Source of the DNA: Octopus sinensis
Taxonomy: Eukaryota
NCBI RefSeq assembly: GCF_006345805.1
Contig: NW_021828394.1
Coordinates: 1-8,832, forward strand
DNA: 8,832 nt
Direction: 5' to 3'
Below the pieces are notes generated by a model. That model was not told the DNA's origin. It ran no database searches and saw only the letters and a program-made list of their open reading frames with translations. Positions 1-8,832 of the stretch are shown piece after piece. Both the position numbers and the translations under genes were made by a program. Every line of letters starts with the position of its first letter. The first letter of the stretch is position 1.

Positions 1-27
1 ATGTGGTACTCTGATGGGTGCTGACGG

Positions 28-480
28 CGGTAGTGGTGGTGGTGCTGGTGGTGCTGGTGATGGTAGTGGCAGTGATGGTGGTGGTGGTGGTGGTGGTGGT
101 GGTGGTAGTGGTGGTGGTGGTGGTGGTGGTAGTGGTAGGGATGGTGGTGGTGGTAGTGGCAGTGGTGGTGCTGGTGGTAGTGGCAGTCATGGTGGTGGTG
201 GTGGTGCTGGTGATGGTAGTGGCAGTGATGGTGGTGGTGGTGGTGCTGGTGGTAGTGGCAGTGATGGTGGTGGTGGTAGTGGCAGTGGTGGTGGTGGTGG
301 TAGTGGCAGTCATGGTGGCGGTGGTGGTGGTGGTAGTGGCAGTGATGGTGGTGGTGGTGGTGGTGGTAGTGGCAGTGATGGTGATTGTGGTGGTGGTGGT
401 GGTGGTGATGATGGTGGAAGCAATGGTAGAGGTGGTGGTGCTGCTACTACAGATGGTGGTCGAGGTGGTAGTCGTGGTGT
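28..480 (+). repeat. Imperfect (GGT)n trinucleotide tract with a recurring GTAGTGGCAGT sub-motif
   Basis: Direct reading. GTAGTGGCAGT occurs 9 times (starts 63, 153, 177, 216, 252, 276, 300, 333, 366), always spaced by multiples of 3. Confidence 0.95.
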
Positions 481-558
481 TCCAGATATGACCATCCCCT
501 CTCTTTCTAGCAACATACAGGATGTCGTTATCAAACAGGTCCTTCCCCATTATAAGTC

Positions 559-801
559 AGTAGGGTGTGATCTGAGGATAATTTAGCTGCTATGTCTAGC
601 AGATTGACCAAACCACACAGAAATGCTCTCGTGGTTGTTGTTGCTCATCTCAGGTCAGCTAAGACTCAGCAGACCAATAATGGAAAGGAGTTCCAACCAT
701 GACCATCCTGCCTTTTGCTATGTACCCATAACTACATGATCCACCATGTTCTTCCTATTTTAAAGACGGTAGGGTAGGTATTTGGCTGCTACATCTAGCA
801 G
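559..801 (+). repeat. Degraded fragments of a dispersed repeat (ATTT(A/G)GCTGCTA..TCTAGCAG motif)
   Basis: 581-602 and 780-801 match at 19/22, and each is preceded by GTAGGGT. TTCCA..ATGACCATCC occurs at ~480-497 and ~694-710. A related reverse-strand copy lies at ~7817-7850. Confidence 0.45.
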
Positions 802-832
802 GTAAAGCAACCGCAAACAAGTAGTGTTGACA

Positions 833-985
833 GTGGTGGTGGTGGTGGTGGTAGTAGCTGTGATGGTGGTGGTGGTGGTGATGGTGGTGGTGACAGTGAT
901 GGTAGTGGAGATGGTGGTGGTGGTATTGGAGGCAATTGCAGTAGTGTTGGTGGTGGTGGTGGTGGTAGTAGTAGTAGTAGTAGTA
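833..985 (+). repeat. (GGT)n/(GTA)n trinucleotide tract
   Basis: Direct reading. Confidence 0.95.
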
Positions 986-1403
986 CAACACTACCACCAC
1001 AACCAACAGCACTATTGCAAAAAATACCACCATCACCACCACTATCACCACAACCTCCACCATCACCACCACCACCATCATCAACACCACCATCGCCACC
1101 ATCATCTCCACCACCACCACCACCATCATCAACACCACCACCACTACCATCACCACCTCAACCTACACCATCACCACCACAACCGTCATCCCCACCACCA
1201 CCACCATCACCACCACAAACTCCACCATCACCACCACCACCATCATCACCACCACCACCACCATCACCAACAGGTTCAAGACTTACTCAACCATCATTGC
1301 CGCCGACACCACCACCACCACCACCACCGTCATCACAATTACCATCATCCCCCACCGCCGCCGCCATCCAGATCACTCCCCTCCCCCACCCACCACCCCA
1401 CCC
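986..1403 (+). repeat. (CCA)n/(TCA)n trinucleotide tract, the reverse complement class of the preceding tract
   Basis: Direct reading. Confidence 0.95.
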
Positions 1404-1483
1404 AACATTGTTGCATATTTGAATCGATTGGTAAAGCGTCCTGTTTAAAGTTTCATGTTAATTGTACACATATTGACACATTT

Positions 1484-1710
1484 ATACACACACACACACA
1501 CATATATATACACACACATGTACATACACGCATACACACATATGTATGTATGTACACACGCACGCACTGACATAATTCCAGAATGCGTGTGCGTGCGTAT
1601 ATACACATTGACACACTTCCATATATACATACTTTTGTATGCCTGTGTATATGAATATATGTATATATATATATATATATGCACCTATGTACATACGTGT
1701 ATGTATGTTT
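1484..1710. repeat. Compound (CA)n/(TA)n/(TG)n microsatellite region
   Basis: Direct reading. Confidence 0.9.
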
Positions 1711-1717
1711 GCTCCTA

Positions 1718-2101
1718 TACTCTTTTACTTATTTCAGTCATTTGACTGCGGCCATGCTGGAGCACCGCCTTTAGTCGAGCAACTCGACTCAAGGACTTGT
1801 TCTTTGTAAGCCCAGTACTTATTACTTTTGCCGAACCGCTAAGTAACGGGGACATAAACACACCAGCATCGGTTGTCAAGCAATGCTAGGGGGACAAACA
1901 CGGACACACAAACACACACGCACACATATATACATATATACAACAGGCTTCTTTCAGTTTCCGTCTACCAAATCCACTCACAAGGCATTGGTCAGCCCGG
2001 GGCTATAGCAGAAGACACTTGCCCAAGATGCCACGCAGTGGGACTGAACCCAGAACCATGTGGTTGGTAAACAAGCTACTTACCACACAGCCACTCCTGT
2101 G

Positions 2102-2104
<3 letters not shown>
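1718..2104 (-). mobile_element. tRNA-derived SINE, family 1, near full-length copy (CORE-like, possibly related to octopus OR-type SINEs)
   Basis: Reverse complement aligns along its length with 5960-6368, apart from a ~10-bp deletion near 1820. It has the same A/B-box head, internal microsatellite and AAAAGAGTA tail. Confidence 0.9.
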
Positions 2105-2146
<42 letters not shown>

Positions 2147-2155
2147 TATGATATA
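2104..2155. repeat. (TA)n microsatellite
   Basis: Direct reading. Confidence 0.95.
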
Positions 2156-2387
2156 TAGAACTCACAAGAGGGGAAAGAGAGATAAAACAGACAGTAAAAG
2201 GGAAACCGTCCCTTGCATTTGAAAACTATTGAAATATTTTTTAAAAACATTTTACTTAATTTTCCCACAATTAATTATTTTCATCATGTTTTACCCTAAG
2301 TTGAAAAAGTCGCAAAGTCAGAAACCGGTACTAAAATGTTCTTCATGATAAAATATTTTAGCATTTTCTACCTTGTCTTATTTTCTT

Positions 2388-2503
2388 TATATATATATGT
2401 ATATATACACATATATACATACATATATATACATTATATATATATACACATATATATACATATATATATATATGCATATATATATATACACACATATATA
2501 TAC

Positions 2504-2552
<49 letters not shown>

Positions 2553-2651
2553 ACATATATATACATATATATATATTATATATGTATATATATATACATA
2601 TATATTATATACATATATATATATATATATACATATATATACATATATATC

Positions 2652-2698
<47 letters not shown>

Positions 2699-2711
2699 CA
2701 TATATATATAT

Positions 2712-2749
<38 letters not shown>

Positions 2750-2852
2750 ATACATATATATATATATACATATATATATATAATATACACATATATATAT
2801 ATATGTATATACATATATATATATACATATATATATCTATATATATATATAT
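2388..2852. repeat. Long interrupted (TA)n/(TACATA)n tract, ~465 bp
   Basis: Direct reading. Confidence 0.97.
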
Positions 2853-2899
2853 GGCTGAGGAGACTGACAAGTGTCAAGATGGCGTATTGGAATAGCTGT

Positions 2900-2960
2900 A
2901 TCCAGACCATGCAAGCATGGAAAAACAACCATGAAAGAAATGAAACAATGAAGATAATGA
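2900..2960 (+). mobile_element. Possible decayed 3' tail of SINE family 2 or a related LINE
   Basis: CCATGC-AA-GCATGG-AAAA at 2907-2924 resembles CCATGC-TA-GCATGG-AAAG in the family-2 tails and is followed by a degenerate ATGA/GAT-rich stretch. Confidence 0.3.
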
Positions 2961-3096
2961 TACACACGCATACACATACATGCATATGTACACACACATA
3001 GACACATACTCTTATCTACGCCTTGCATTGTTATTTGTGCGATAGTCATAGGTGGTTGTTGAATGCCATCTTGGTTATCTCTCGAAATCACCTGTC

Positions 3097-3193
3097 AACA
3101 CACACACACACACACATATATGTATATATATATATATATATACATACATACATGGATATATACATATACATACATATATATACCTACACACAT

Positions 3194-3248
<55 letters not shown>

Positions 3249-3328
3249 AACACATATATACATATATTTACATAGATACATAAATATGCCCACATATTCT
3301 TATAAACATCTGCTTATATATCTATCTA

Positions 3329-3359
<31 letters not shown>

Positions 3360-3393
3360 CTATATATATATATATATTATATATATACACATA
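3097..3393. repeat. (CA)n/(TA)n compound microsatellite ending at the Tc1 TA target site
   Basis: Direct reading. Confidence 0.95.
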
Positions 3394-3930
3394 CAGTGGC
3401 GGCCAAAATGTTCAGAACGGCATTGTTTTTGTCAGAAAAGTAGATATAATTTTTTATCAAAGTTGTTTTATATTCTATAATTTTCACAGACAATAAATAC
3501 AATATTATTTGTTTTTGCCTGAGATTTTGGTGTAATTTGAGAGGATAATACAAAAGTTATAGATGGTTTAGTGATTTACTGCAAAACCCATGGCGGCCAA
3601 AATGATCAGAACGGTTGCTTTTACTCCGTGTTTTAGTATATTGAACCGGCGAACTCTAATGTTTTGAATTTGTTTACGTGATGGTTCATTTACTAAACAT
3701 TAGTAAGAATATTTGCAGTGTACTTTGTTAATATAATGCCACTTACTCCATTACTAATTCGTCAGCAGATTATTAAGCTTCGAAAGAAGGATAATTTAAG
3801 TATTGGGTCTATTGCAAAGATTGCTAACAAGTCAAGAAGTGTTGTTCACGGTATTCTTAAGGTCTACGATGATTGTGGTTCGTGTGAAGCAAGAAAGTTT
3901 ACAGGTAGGCCAAGAAAAACGACCAAGAGA
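3394..3930 (+). mobile_element. Left part of a Tc1/mariner DNA transposon with IR/DR-type terminus; no right end found in the window
   Basis: TA (3392-3393) followed by CAGTG, the typical Tc1 terminus. A 24-bp direct repeat TGGCGGCCAAAATG(T/A)TCAGAACGG occurs at 3397-3420 and 3591-3614 (23/24). A transposase N-terminus follows downstream. Confidence 0.88.
3736..3930 (+). pseudogene. Truncated Tc1-family transposase, N-terminal paired-like HTH plus GRPR motif only
   Basis: MPLTPLLIRQQIIKLRKKDNLSIGSIAKIANKSRSVVHGILKVYDDCGSCEARKFTGRPRKTTKR fits the Tc1 pattern (RxxII...SxxxIAK...SRSxV..ILK.Y..G.....GRPRKTT). The ORF runs on to a stop at 3985-3987 through non-transposase sequence. No DDE domain is present. 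Confidence 0.88.
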
Positions 3931-3965
3931 ATTGGTCCCCGACGACAAATAGATGATGTAGGAAA
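3930..3965 (-). pseudogene. FUOM: 36-bp inverted fragment of fucose mutarotase CDS (FPTSSICRRGPI)
   Basis: Reverse complement TTTCCTACATCATCTATTTGTCGTCGGGGACCAATT matches 4125-4160 at 34/36, with 31 consecutive exact bases (3930-3960 vs 4130-4160). Confidence 0.9.
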
Positions 3966-4025
3966 CAACTATAGTGGAAAGCTCTGACAACAACTCAATT
4001 ACTTGTGTATTTCGCGTCCAAGAAA

Positions 4026-4244
4026 ATGCCGTTGAAATGAATTCCCTCGATTATCAGTCCTGCTTTGCTTCACGCATTAGCTGCTATGGGACATGGAGAT
4101 GAAATAGTTTTGGCAGATGCACACGTTCGTACATCATCTATTTGTCGTCGGGGACCAATTGAAATTAGCGCAGATGGACACAAAATACCAGAGTTATTAA
4201 AAGCTATATTGCAGCTGTTTCCATTGGACACCTATGAAGACTCA
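4026..4244 (+). pseudogene. FUOM: Fucose mutarotase (FucU/RbsD family) pseudogene fragment; uninterrupted, 3'-truncated, in-frame stop at codon 5
   Basis: ATG at 4026 reads MPLK*IPSIISPALLHALAAMGHGDEIVLADAHVRTSSICRRGPIEISADGHKIPELLKAILQLFPLDTYEDS. This is colinear with the N-terminal half of animal FUOM (LKG.P..LSP.LL..LA.MGHGDEIVLAD.NFP..SIC..GP.EI.ADG..IP.LL.A.L.L.PLDTY). TGA at 4038-4040 replaces the conserved Gly. Similarity is lost after ~codon 73. Confidence 0.92.
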
Positions 4245-4668
4245 GTTTTAGTTCTTCAAAAACTATGTCATTGTATGAAAAAATTTTATAACATTCTTCT
4301 GACATAATGACTCAAATATATTTTTCAACCTTTTAAAACAAGCCTTCTGTAGTTTTTTCACTTTTTACTATTTTCTATATATTCAACCACGTGCTTTCAC
4401 ACAACAACTTTCTCACCTATATATATATCGAGCTTGTAATGTTATGTTTTTTCTTATATTTCTTGAGTTTATTGCACTGACGAACATGAAATGCATATTC
4501 TGCATTAATTGCGAAATCACAGGTGATATGTAACTAAATTCTTTTTTTAAATGATTTGCTTTGAAGTTTTGCATTCGGTAAAATTTTGTTTATTTTAGTA
4601 GTTTTGACCGCATTGGTCCCTCTTTAGAGTGTGGTATCTACGAATTGTAGTACCCTCAATATAATATA

Positions 4669-4672
<4 letters not shown>

Positions 4673-4701
<29 letters not shown>
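4673..4701. repeat. (TA)n microsatellite
   Basis: Direct reading. Confidence 0.95.
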
Positions 4702-4702
<1 letters not shown>

Positions 4703-5040
4703 TAAAAGCAATTAAGATTCAAGTCCGTTCTAATGAATTCACTTGAATGCGGTACTTAACTTAGATGCACCAGAAAACTATATGGTATTAACCATACAAT
4801 AATGTGGGGTGATTATAAACGAGAAAAAAGCAACAAGAATGGATTAGTTTTTTAGTACAATTGTTTCATACAAAGACAGGCTTTATTAAAAGCTGCAAAT
4901 ATTGCAGCAAATACAAGTGTCCCGTACTCATCAGCTAAAACACATATGAGTTCTCCAAACATCTTAGTGGGTGAGGCTACACTCATGAAGTATCGGAGAT
5001 ATATATATAAATAAATAAATATATATATATATATATGAAG

Positions 5041-5073
5041 GGCTTCTTTCGGTTTCTGTCTACCAAATCCACT
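5041..5073 (-). mobile_element. Short internal fragment of SINE family 1
   Basis: GGCTTCTTTCGGTTTCTGTCTACCAAATCCACT is near identical to 1946-1978 and, as in that copy, is preceded by a TA-rich tract. Confidence 0.75.
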
Positions 5074-5321
5074 GTTGTCAATATTTATGCACCATCAATG
5101 TCCCATTCTGATGAAACTGTAGGACAGTTTTATTATGATCTGGCACAAAAGTTCCAATTTCTGACCAGCTGGTCATATTGGGAGATTTCAGTGCAAGAGT
5201 TTGAAAGGACTATGTTTCATGGCCTGTTTTAAGTCGACATGGAATTGGAAAATGCAATAAAAACGGAGTAGCTCTTTTGACATTTTGTACTGAGAACAAT
5301 CTGGTTGTCACCAACATTACT
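5071..5321 (+). pseudogene. Decayed non-LTR retrotransposon (RTE-like LINE) apurinic-like endonuclease fragment
   Basis: TVVNIYAPSMSHSDETVGQFYYDL, then a frameshift near 5148, then KVPISDQLVILGDFSARV*KDYVSWPVLSRHGIGKCNKNGVALLTFCTENNLVVTN. It shows the YAP, FY.DL, LGDF.ARVG, RHG.G.CN.NG..LL.FC..N.L..TN motifs of RTE-type APE domains. TGA at 5202-5204 replaces Gly. Confidence 0.85.
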
Positions 5322-5369
5322 ATGGCAACAGTCCGGATACTTATTGATCAGACCTTGTATATATATATA

Positions 5370-5642
5370 CCGCATCGACTGGCCTCCGTGCTGTGGGCAC
5401 GTAACAACACCCTTCCGAGCGTGGCCGTTCGCCAGCCTCGTCTGGCACCTGTGTCGGTGGCACATAAAATCACCCACTACACTCTCGAAGTGGTTGGCGT
5501 TAGGAAGGGCATCCAACTGTAGAAACACTGCCAGATCTGGCTGGCCTGGTGCAGCCTTCGGGCTCCCCAGACCCCAGTTGAACCGTCCAACCCATGCTAG
5601 CATGGAAAGCGGACGTTAAACGATGATGATGATGATGATGAT
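5370..5642 (+). mobile_element. SINE-like retroposon, family 2, copy A, ending in a (GAT)n tail
   Basis: Homologous to 5644-5834 (GGCAC.TAAAA..ACCCAC.ACACTCTCG.AGTGGTTGGC...GGAA.GGCATCCA.CTGTAGAAAC.CTGCCAGATC). It shares an identical 37-bp 3' end followed by a microsatellite tail typical of LINE-mobilised elements. Confidence 0.75.
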
Positions 5643-5643
5643 A

Positions 5644-5834
5644 TGCCGGTGGCACGTAAAAGCACCCACAACACTCTCGGAGTGGTTGGCATTTGGAAAG
5701 GCATCCAGCTGTAGAAACTCTGCCAGATCAGATTGGAGCCTGGTGTAGCCATCTGGTTCGCCAGCCCTCAGTCAAAATCGTCCAACCCATGCTAGCATGG
5801 AAAGCGGACGTTAAATGACGACAATGACGATGAT
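5644..5834 (+). mobile_element. SINE-like retroposon, family 2, copy B, 5'-shorter and head-to-tail with copy A
   Basis: As for copy A; the tail is the degenerate TGACGACAATGACGATGAT. Confidence 0.75.
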
Positions 5835-5959
5835 ATACATCTAATATAGGATAAAATTTTCGAAAAAATTTTATCAATGGCCAGCATATTAAAAAATAAG
5901 CAAATTTGTTGTTGAAAATGCACCTAAATTTGAAGAACTTGTAATTGTTTAAAATAAAT

Positions 5960-6131
5960 AGGCGCAGGAGTGGCTGTGTGGTAAGTAGCTTGCTAACCAA
6001 CCACATGGTTCCGGGTTCAGTCCCACTGCGTGGCACCTTGGGCAAGTGTCTTCTGCTATAGTCTCGGGCCGACCAAAGCCTTGTGAGTGGATTTGGTAGA
6101 CAGAAACTGAAAGAAGCCTGTCGTATATATG

Positions 6132-6164
<33 letters not shown>

Positions 6165-6368
6165 CTGTGTTTGTCCCCCTAGCATTGCTTGACAACCGAT
6201 GCTGGTGTGTTTATGTCCCCGTTACTTAGCGGTTCGGCAAAAAGAGACCGATAAAATAAGTACTGGGCTTACAAAGAATAAGTCCCAGGGTCGATTTGCT
6301 CGACTAAAGGCGGTGCTCCAGCATGGCCGCAGTCAAATGACTGAAACAAGTAAAAGAGTAAAAGAGTA
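5960..6368 (+). mobile_element. tRNA-derived SINE, family 1, full-length copy (CORE-like)
   Basis: A-box-like TGGCTGTGTGG at 5971-5981 and B-box-like GGGTTCAGTCCC at 6013-6024. The following ACCTTGGGCAAGT resembles the CORE-SINE/MIR core. Internal (TA)n(TG)n at ~6124-6170 and a repeated AAAAGAGTA tail. An inverted copy lies at 1718-2104. Confidence 0.9.
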
Positions 6369-6671
6369 ATAGTTACATATACACCAAACTAGTCTCAGTG
6401 ATATTTGTTGTATATTAATGGTAAAAATTTAGAACTATGAATTCAAGAAACATCTTTAAAATTTATCAACATTGAAACTTTTAAAGATGTTTTTCTTAGT
6501 TGGGAACAAAAACAGGTCAGTGAAGACATACAAGGAATCTGAACGAAAATAAACATGAAGGGCCATTAGAGCAGAACAAGGGTAAAATAGCAAATGCTGG
6601 AGACATATTTTCTTTGACAAGAGAAAAGATAGAAGAGAGAGAGGTAGAATACGTTCAAAAGACACCAATAT

Positions 6672-6784
6672 AATAATTACTAGACTTACAAAGAATAAGT
6701 CCTGGGGTCGATTTGCTCGACTAAAGGCAGTGCTCCAGCATGGCTGCAGTCAAATGACTGAAACAAGTAAAAGAGTAAAGAGTA
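6672..6784 (+). mobile_element. 5'-truncated copy of SINE family 1, 3' module only
   Basis: Aligns with ~6256-6368 (CTTACAAAGAATAAGTCC..GGGTCGATTTGCTCGACTAAAGGC.GTGCTCCAGCATGGC.GCAGTCAAATGACTGAAACAAGTAAAAGAGTA). Confidence 0.9.
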
Positions 6785-7053
6785 TATATCTATCTTTCTA
6801 CCTGCCTCTCTTTTTCTCATCTCTCACAAAATATCTATATCTATCCCCTTTCTCTGTCTCTCTTTCTCTGTCATCCTCCCTCCCCACTCCTCTCTCCATC
6901 TGCCCCCACTTGTTCATCTCCGCCACCACCACCATTACCAGTCACTCTCCACCACCTTCACACGTGCCTCCGGCCCCACCCACCCGCAGCAATCTGTGCC
7001 ACCAGCCAGGCAGGTGGTTCACTGATATACCTCACCTCACCTCACATCACAGC

Positions 7054-7409
7054 AAGAGAGATAGATAGATAGATAGACAGAAAGGGAGAGAGAGAGATAG
7101 GACAGGAGAGAGAGAAAGTGAGAAAGAGAAAGAAAGAGAGAAAGAGAAAGAGAGAGAGAAGGAAAGAGAGTAAGAGAGAGAGAAGGAAAGAGAGAGAGAG
7201 TAAGAGAGAAGGAGTGTAAGAGATAGAGAGAGAAAGAGAGTGAGAGACAAAGAGAGAGAGACAGTAAGAGAGAGAAAGAGAGAGTAAGAGAGCAAGAGAG
7301 AGAGACAGTAAGAGAGAGTAAGAGAGAGAAAAAGAGATAGAGATAGAGAGAGAGAAAGAGAGCAAGAGTGAGAGACAGTAAGAGAGAGAGTAAGAGAGAG
7401 AGAGAGAGA
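7054..7409 (+). repeat. Interrupted (GA)n polypurine tract, ~355 bp
   Basis: Direct reading, with repeated sub-motifs such as ACAGTAAGAGAG at 7261, 7306 and 7375. Confidence 0.95.
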
Positions 7410-7677
7410 TCATCATCATCATTTCACCCGCTGCCGTTGGGGATCGAAGCAGCTTCAACCGGTGCTGGCTGGTTTGTCAGCTGGTTGATGCCTGCAGTGA
7501 AAGGAGAGAAGGAGGCAGGGCACAAAAAAAAACAACAACAACACGAGGTGGTGGAGAGGGGGGAAATGGGGGTGGGGGATGGCATTTACGACAGCCAGTG
7601 GGAGGGAAAAACATAGTGCTGGGGAGGAAGGATTATGTGCAGCGAGGCAGGTGAATGACAAGGTTCTTGCTATTCTT

Positions 7678-7740
7678 GTTTTGGTAGTTGCTGTTGTTGT
7701 TGTTGTTCTTGTTTGTGATGTTGTTGTTATTGTTTTGGTG
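7678..7740 (+). repeat. Imperfect (GTT)n tract
   Basis: Direct reading. Confidence 0.85.
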
Positions 7741-7864
7741 GTTCCTGTACCCCACCCCCTATTTTTTATGTAACTAAGAATCATATGAGCCTAGATATAC
7801 AAAATATCAAGAAAACTGGCTAGAAATAGCTCAAAATTCCCTCAAATCTCTTTGACCCTTATTT

Positions 7865-7925
7865 TTAACCCTTTAACATTCAGATTACTCTGCCAAATCT
7901 AATCCTTATTTATCCACATTATTTC
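7865..7925 (+). mobile_element. Putative left end of a TTAA-targeting (piggyBac-like) non-autonomous element
   Basis: TTAA at 7865-7868 is followed directly by CCCTTT, and the sequence leads into the tandem array. No matching AAAGGGTTAA right end is seen in the window. Confidence 0.4.
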
Positions 7926-8725
7926 GAATTAATCCCGCATTATCTCATAGCTTTGAGATTTCAAAGATGTGATTGTTTATTTTTAGAATGACATTGTAGG
8001 GTAGGTGTGAATGGCTGGATCTGGTCTTGTTTTGAATTAATCATGCATTATCTCATAGCTTTGAGATTTCAATGATGAGATTGTATATTTTTAGAATGAC
8101 ATTGTAGGGTAGGTGTGAGAGGCTGGATCTGGCCTTGTTTTCTATTAATCATGCATTATCTCATAGCTTTGAGATTTCAATGATGTGATTGTTTATTTTT
8201 AGAATGACATTGTAGGGTAGGTGTGAGAGGCTGGATCTGGCCTTGTTTTGAATTAATCATGCATTATCTCATGGCTTTGAGATATCAATAATGTTTATTT
8301 TTAGAATGACATTGTAGGGTAGGTGTGAGAGGCTGGATCAGGCCTTGTTTTGAATTAATCATGCAATATCTCATAGCTTTGATATATTAATAATGTTTAT
8401 TTTTAGAATGACATTGTAGGGTAGGTGTGAGAGGCTGGATCTGGCCTTGTTTTGAATTAATCATGCATTATCTCATAGCTTTCAGATATCAATAATGTTT
8501 ATTTTTAGAATAACATTGTAGGGTAGGTGTGAGAGGCTGGATCAGGCCTTGTTTTGAATTAATCATGCATTATCTCATAGCTTTGAGATTTCAATAATGT
8601 TTATTTTTAGAATGACATTGTAGGGTAGGTGTGAGAGGCTGGATCAGGCCTTGTTTTGAATTAATCATGCATTATCTCATAGCTTTGAGATTTCAATAAT
8701 GTTTATTTTTAGAATGACATTGTAG
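7926..8725 (+). repeat. Tandem array: 3 x 108 bp + 4 x 102 bp + 68-bp partial unit
   Basis: The anchor GAATTAATC (CTATTAATC in unit 3) starts at 7926, 8034, 8142, 8250, 8352, 8454, 8556 and 8658. Units are highly similar and there are no unique spacers. Confidence 0.97.
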
Positions 8726-8832
8726 AATGACAACTTCTGGCTCTGTAGTATAAATGTCTAGCTTTTGTAAGTTCTGAATTAAAATCTTCCACCAAACCTT
8801 AGTCACAATTTATGTTCCTAACACTAGCTGAA

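Follow-up and report, generated by a model that had tools for sequence, protein, structure and literature searches.

Background

Retrocopies of mRNAs that carry 5' inversions have been reported (PMC12016303, PMC2912911), and 5' inversions were found in 3 of 23 processed pseudogenes (PMC12016303). In humans, the median overlap between the two twin-primed cDNAs is 12 bp (quartiles 4-17; PMC12016303). The ORF2 protein of LINEs (ORF2p) switches templates at RNA 5' ends, extends hairpins as well as short primers that anneal by 4-6 bp, and copies DNA templates (PMC10830420). Endonuclease-independent insertions have a structure unlike that of classical L1 insertions; additional nucleotides are often present, and target-DNA deletions go along with them (PMC1920257). 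Retrocopies that arise by template switching are partial (PMC5131818). With regard to small RNAs, miRNA precursors are hairpins of ~70 nt (PMC12479628), and two surveys found no dedicated endo-siRNA pathway in molluscs (PMC12479628, PMC11114477), one of which (PMC12479628) kept an Octopus bimaculoides among its animals.

We describe a locus of Octopus sinensis in which a short inverted repeat of FUOM coding sequence adjoins the remnant of a Tc1-like transposon. The feature is most likely an ordinary rearranged processed pseudogene with a non-classical, nested 5' inversion, and it offers a cleanly resolved cephalopod case of non-canonical retroposition.

Methods

The window is the whole stretch of DNA that was analysed, namely 8,832 nt of O. 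sinensis contig NW_021828394.1 (positions 1-8,832, forward strand). The FUOM locus of O. vulgaris (OX597827.1, hereafter L001) served as the parental reference, and every parental comparison uses O. vulgaris sequence. A microsatellite-free stretch, 3700-4400, was chosen for a second randomisation test of the inverted repeat. Coordinates of the features are collected in Table 1.

Table 1. Positions of the features at the FUOM inverted repeat of O. sinensis
Feature	Position in window	Strand	Evidence or detail
Left (5') end of Tc1-like DNA transposon, internally truncated at 3929/3930	3394..3929	+	terminus TA followed by CAGTGGCGGCCAAAATGTTCAGAACGG at 3394
Outer terminal repeat / putative transposase-binding site	3394..3420	+	27-mer, second copy with 3 mismatches; 0 expected by chance
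Inner direct copy of terminal motif, IR/DR-like layout	3588..3614	+	
Remnant coding for transposase residues 1-65 (first helix-turn-helix)	3736..3930	+	13 relatives, 52-71% identity, E<=1e-10
Chimeric ORF: 65 transposase residues and 18 from antisense FUOM and 5'UTR	3736..3987	+	
Inverted arm, antisense copy of FUOM exon 2 (codons F33-I44)	3930..3965	-	36/36 vs O. vulgaris FUOM exon 2, L001 12556-12521
Microhomology GGAAA, 5 nt, common to inverted-arm end and first copied 5'UTR bases	3961..3965	.	homology borders
Processed FUOM retrocopy fragment, intron-less	3961..4290 (end approximate)	+	blastn vs O. vulgaris FUOM locus, three collinear blocks
Retrocopy parts	5'UTR 3961-4025; exon 1 to 4107; exon 2 4108-4176; exon 3 4177-4244; degraded exon 4 4245-~4290	+	
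In-frame TGA at codon 5	4038..4040	+	replaces conserved Gly5 codon (GGA in parent)
Forward arm in retrocopy exon 2	4125..4160	+	4125 T>G and 4129 C>G, both derived; FP>VR

Results

A 36-base inverted repeat of FUOM exon 2

The upstream arm of the inverted repeat, AATTGGTCCCCGACGACAAATAGATGATGTAGGAAA, matches the reverse complement of the downstream arm at 34 of 36 positions, with an exact run of 31 nt. Similarity of the arms stops at both edges without extension, and the spacer between them (3966-4124) measures 159 nt. The initial annotation had given these arms, identities and loop, and all of them were reproduced; both arms also lie, as it had stated, downstream of the transposase start on one strand (ATG at 3736, + strand). 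No exact inverted repeat in 3700-4400 is longer than this 31-mer; in 300 first-order Markov resamples of that stretch, the longest one averaged 9.0 and never exceeded 13. Shuffling of 3401-4650, microsatellite included, had earlier produced inverted repeats of up to 27 nt, a value that we assume to come from self-complementary (TA)n runs formed by the shuffling. The 36-base inverted repeat is real and far above chance expectation.

The reverse complement of 3930-3965 translates to FPTSSICRRGPI, the same peptide as in the parent protein. Since the inverted arm is identical to parental exon 2 over its full length, both mismatches between the arms represent later changes in the forward copy. This bears on whether the junction could have been made by a chimeric or fold-back read during library preparation or assembly. 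Short inverted duplications at junctions, such as the one found here, are typical of amplification chimeras. An artefact would, however, duplicate the adjacent retrocopy exactly, whereas the arms here are mismatched at two positions, at both of which the inverted arm has the parental base; this argues for divergence after a real event. We regard an artefactual origin as highly improbable.

The FUOM piece as a processed retrocopy

Sequence downstream of the inverted arm was aligned with the O. vulgaris locus using blastn. Window positions 3961-4107 correspond to L001 9933-10082 at 96% identity (exon 1 and 68 nt of the parental 5'UTR), 4106-4177 to L001 12502-12573 at 95.8% (exon 2), and 4176-4246 to L001 13250-13320 at 98.6% (exon 3). 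The blocks abut precisely at 4107/4108 and 4176/4177, with a less certain junction at 4244/4245. The parental introns are ~2.4 kb, ~0.7 kb and ~1.3 kb in length, and the first two are bounded by GT...AG. By its sequence, the FUOM piece is a processed (intron-less) retrocopy; with no introns in the window copy, we rejected a segmental (DNA) duplication of the gene. The inverted piece had initially been placed at a transposon/host junction. It does sit at the border between transposon and FUOM sequence, but its neighbour there is the 5' end of an intron-less FUOM retrocopy and not host gene DNA.

Over 281 nt, exons 1-3 carry 7 substitutions and a single 3-nt indel relative to the O. vulgaris parent (97.5% identity). 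The closest protein match of the FUOM piece is a fucose mutarotase-like protein of O. bimaculoides (94%); O. vulgaris FUOM was also found, as was PDB entry 2wcu (1.8e-26). Pfam RbsD_FucU (PF05025) is matched at 6e-18 over profile positions 1-72 of 138 only, with an in-frame stop inside the match, and a complete RbsD/FucU domain with an open frame was not found at 3961-4290. In addition to the stop, changes relative to the parent include FP>VR within the conserved ADxxFPTSSIC motif, R47S and a deletion in exon 4. To judge from these disabling mutations, the FUOM copy is dead.

Past 4244, a degraded copy of exon 4 reads GTTTTAGTT...AAAACT-ATG, followed by TATGAAAAAATTTTAT at 4274-4289. The local score of this match, 34.75, was reached by 4 of 2000 shuffles and by 3 of 629 other window pieces (p ~0.002-0.005). 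Retention of intron 3 at 4245-4290, instead of exon 4, was rejected, as its score of 20 is at noise level compared with 34.75. The exon-4 part (4245-4290) is far more diverged than exons 1-3, with substitutions and a ~28-nt deletion; the divergence could reflect mutations clustered close to the 3' breakpoint, or exon 4 may differ between species. FUOM exons 5-6, the 3'UTR and poly(A) were searched for in the window and not found, the copy ending in exon 4 at ~4290; they could sit beyond nested insertions or outside the window. Target-site duplications flanking the retrocopy are not evident, its right boundary not being defined. The copy appears to be 5'-complete and 3'-incomplete. The missing exons 5-6, 3'UTR and poly(A), together with the absence of visible target-site duplications, give it a greater likeness to endonuclease-independent break-repair retroposition, or to a template-switch partial retrocopy, than to a standard target-primed insertion.

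At its 5' side, the copy reflects reverse transcription of spliced FUOM mRNA up to 3961, the first copied base. This base probably lies at or near the mRNA 5' end. In the parental locus, the sequence just before the first copied base (L001 9880-9933) ends in ...CTTCAAG, and a TATTAAATAG motif is found ~50 nt upstream of L001 9933. The AG of ...CTTCAAG may act as a splice acceptor; 9933 would then mark the start of an exon and not of transcription. It is possible that 3961 marks a truncation of the copy and not the end of the mRNA.

In a search for other copies, neither three window ORFs nor the FUOM isoform of O. bimaculoides had an exact match in protein look-ups, and the 31-nt junction sequence was not found in JGI metagenome contigs.

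A Tc1-like transposon remnant upstream of the inverted arm

The remnant that precedes the inverted arm is 536 bp in length. It has a TA-flanked left end that begins with CAGT (TA followed by CAGTGGCGGCC at 3394), which we take to resemble a Tc1 terminus. A right terminal repeat was not found in the window, either with up to 3 mismatches or by BLAST with 7-nt words. Immediately upstream of the transposon end, a (TA)n/(CA)n-type microsatellite occupies ~1 kb (2336-3390).

The ORF that starts at the ATG at 3736 encodes MPLTPLL...GRPRKTTKR. Among 1.8 billion representative proteins, 43 relatives were found, all of them short fragments; they include the 13 closest ones given in Table 1. Past ...TTKR the relatives read xDRAIVK..., which Pfam assigns to HTH_Tnp_Tc3_2, the second helix-turn-helix of Tc1/mariner transposases; for the remnant itself, Pfam returned weak PAX/HTH matches only. 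Transposase homology ends at residue 65 (3927-3930) and never resumes elsewhere in the window, where neither a full paired-like DNA-binding domain nor a DDE catalytic domain was found beyond these 65 residues. The Tc1-like element is, going by what it encodes, a broken left-end remnant and not an intact member of its family. A simple insertion of the retrocopy into an intact transposon, with duplications, was also considered, and no right end or further transposase was found to show it. For the chimeric ORF of 83 residues, a collection of 5.8 billion proteins contained no matching protein, the one hit, at 66%, being unrelated.

The inversion junction and its probable origin

Antisense exon-2 homology extends up to 3965 and parental 5'UTR homology begins at 3961, an overlap of 5 nt, and the inversion junction coincides with the very first base of the retrocopy. 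On its other side, the inverted arm adjoins the Tc1-like transposon, which is cut after transposase residue 65. The target side of this transposon/arm junction shows no match, and base 3930 fits both sources.

Template switching had been proposed as the class of origin, and a microhomology-type switch is supported by the 5 nt shared with an inverted template ~165 nt off. The more specific proposal, a fold-back of the MMBIR/FoSTeS kind, stands in part: the insertion is templated and proceeds via microhomology, but the junction coincides with the 5' end of the cDNA copy, and this speaks for the reverse-transcription stage. Located at the first copied 5'UTR base, the junction points to an event during reverse transcription rather than to replication-based MMBIR/FoSTeS. 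We infer that the switch took place during reverse transcription and that its target was a break in the transposon.

Our preferred reading, to which we assign a probability of about 0.6, is that the inverted repeat is a structural scar left by an RNA-mediated event, without any dedicated function. Spliced FUOM mRNA was reverse transcribed up to base 3961, 65 nt before the window ATG. The 3' end of the resulting first-strand cDNA, ...GTTGTTTCC-3' (longer: ...CTATAGTTGTTTCC), would carry TTTCC, complementary to GGAAA, and could have annealed by these 5 nt to a GGAAA within exon 2 of the same cDNA, ~165 nt earlier (fold-back self-priming). Alternatively, it may have paired with a second cDNA primed at exon 2, whose 3' GGAAA would lie on the TTTCC end, a nested variant of twin priming. 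An extension of 31 nt would then have added TACATCATCTATTTGTCGTCGGGGACCAATT and created the antisense exon-2 arm; the reverse complement of such a product would be exactly the window from 3930 onward. The product would next have been joined to a broken end inside the Tc1-like transposon at 3929/3930, with the remaining transposon lost or displaced. Subsequent decay of the copy gave the codon-5 stop, the FP>VR change of the forward arm and the exon-4 deletions.

Differences from the parent number 0 in 36 for the inverted arm and 7 in 281 for the retrocopy. The lack of differences in the arm is compatible with one simultaneous origin of arm and retrocopy. The retrocopy could also have arrived first and been rearranged later. 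The latter order would apply to a fold-back at the DNA level, in which a break at or near the 5' end of a resident retrocopy is followed by resection, fold-back through GGAAA/TTTCC, a 31-nt extension by DNA polymerase and joining to the broken Tc1-like element. Such a course would yield an identical final sequence, including the 5-nt microhomology and the nearby inverted template, and the window around the locus is a mosaic of truncated repeats, so that breakage and repair are common there. It requires, however, that the break coincide with the first copied 5'UTR base. It must also have been early, given 0/36 differences in the arm against 7/281 in the retrocopy, a weak test in which P(0 differences) is ~0.4. 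We consider this course possible but rather unlikely, and favour the RNA-mediated scar.

Repeats surrounding the locus

The window as a whole is microsatellite- and SINE-rich. Two long trinucleotide-type low-complexity blocks are found near its start, one GGN-rich with a Gly-rich ORF (14-586) and one CCA/CAC-rich with His/Pro-rich ORFs (985-1374). These blocks are ~71-75% complementary over ~350 nt and form a large imperfect inverted repeat, ~550-700 nt apart. A (GA)n-rich block of 400 nt is present at 7025-7442.

A SINE-like dispersed repeat occurs on both strands, at 1712-2108, 5960-6367 and 6656-6775, and ends in (TA)n/(CA)n. Its copies are 85-97% identical to copies in the O. vulgaris FUOM introns (L001 15667-15967 and 10944-11298). 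Neither Rfam nor tRNA scans of the window gave a hit. Another dispersed repeat is present in two adjacent copies at 5375-5839, with 80-91% identity to L001 12918-13172 (FUOM intron 2) and L001 24400-24590. At 7862-8827 there is a tandem array with a period of 102-108 nt and at least 8 units, which reach a mutual identity of up to 97%; the array is 70-78% related to a single unit at L001 19687-19834. Positions 5075-5330, directly behind a SINE tail, contain the frame-shifted reading frames VVNIYAPS...LVILGDFSARV...NGVALLTFCTENNLVVTN, which we take to resemble part of a LINE apurinic-type endonuclease domain. Pfam gave no hit to 5075-5330 at E<=0.01, and the LINE endonuclease reading was not confirmed.

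The predicted hairpin and its regulatory potential

The arms pair in the predicted minimum free energy (MFE) structure of 3900-4200 (-90.6 kcal/mol, z = -4.6), as the initial annotation had anticipated. The predicted stem consists of 31 perfect and 3 further pairs around the 159-nt loop. The arm-arm duplex has an energy of -60.3 kcal/mol. The MFE structure of the longer stretch 3394-4700 still contains 33 arm-arm pairs.

A functional hairpin would be transcribed from the Tc1 5' end and its 31-36-bp stem processed to small RNAs, so that the antisense 5' arm would repress the parental FUOM mRNA. Consistent with this, the predicted stem is stable and also forms in a long context, the 5' arm is complementary to O. 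vulgaris FUOM mRNA at 36 of 36 positions, and the Tc1 5' end upstream is intact. The stem would, however, give at most one Dicer duplex, and a 159-nt loop is unlike those of miRNA precursors. Stems of 31-36 bp are near the lower limit for Dicer and ADAR substrates, and in combination with a 159-nt loop such a stem is also unlike long hpRNAs. The forward arm is decaying, and its 2 substitutions give no indication that the stem is maintained by selection; searches of the protein collection and of JGI metagenome contigs showed neither another copy nor conservation. The closest functional precedent is the human partial retrocopy psiPPM1K, whose inverted repeats give rise to esiRNAs (PMC3616710), but molluscs are reported to be without DICER2/siAGO and without an endo-siRNA signature (PMC11114477, PMC12479628). 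We judge a functional hairpin very improbable. The earlier suggestion of hairpin-derived small RNAs against FUOM gained no support, as the stem is only 31-36 bp and molluscs are reported to have no dedicated endo-siRNA pathway. There is an equally slight chance that a chimeric RNA from the Tc1 5' end, with its perfect 36-nt antisense match to FUOM exon 2 inside the 31-bp stem, feeds one of the pathways available to molluscs (piRNA production in a transposon-rich cluster, miRNA-like Dicer processing or ADAR recruitment) and in this way modulates the parental FUOM mRNA. If true, the locus would represent a cephalopod antisense regulator born from a retrocopy.

Discussion

The RNA-mediated scar described here suggests that the repertoire of template switching and microhomology use described for mammalian L1, and for LTR elements, marks octopus genomes with scars of similar kinds. 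The locus also illustrates a route by which short antisense pieces of host genes may land downstream of transposon promoters. The locus itself opens no new question, and its value would increase only if it were transcribed with small RNAs or edited duplexes.

Among known systems, 5'-inverted L1-mediated insertions (twin priming) are alike in that an inverted 5' segment and a direct segment of one RNA are joined by microhomology. The octopus inverted segment differs in being only 36 nt long and in lying wholly inside the region of the direct segment: it represents mRNA positions ~168-203, nested in a direct segment that runs from 1 to ~330, instead of adjoining it as in twin priming. The direct segment extends 167 nt beyond the inverted one, to the first copied base. 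A poly(A)-primed direct segment and target-site duplications, as expected from twin priming, were not found at the octopus locus. The nested copies and the lack of poly(A) agree with the earlier statement that classic twin priming fits poorly.

Endonuclease-independent L1 insertions and template-switch retrocopies resemble the octopus locus as partial copies with no poly(A) or target-site duplication, and further in having extra nucleotides at a junction, target DNA that was apparently lost and a switch mediated by microhomology (PMC1920257, PMC5131818). They differ from the octopus copy, which has no attached LINE or LTR sequence in the window. Inverted duplications formed by fold-back or MMBIR share with it a short templated inverted insertion from ~165 bp off and a 5-nt microhomology; the octopus switch point, by contrast, falls at the end of a reverse-transcribed copy, a coincidence not expected from a model with DNA steps only. 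Pseudogenes that give small RNAs from hairpins (mouse oocyte, Drosophila hpRNAs, human psiPPM1K) have in common with it a retro-pseudogene origin and a foldable inverted repeat of parental coding sequence (PMC3616710). The octopus stem differs in that it is very short, is predicted from sequence and belongs to a phylum reported to be without a dedicated endo-siRNA pathway (PMC12479628, PMC11114477). On balance, the octopus inversion is best read as a nested, non-classical relative of the L1 5' inversions.
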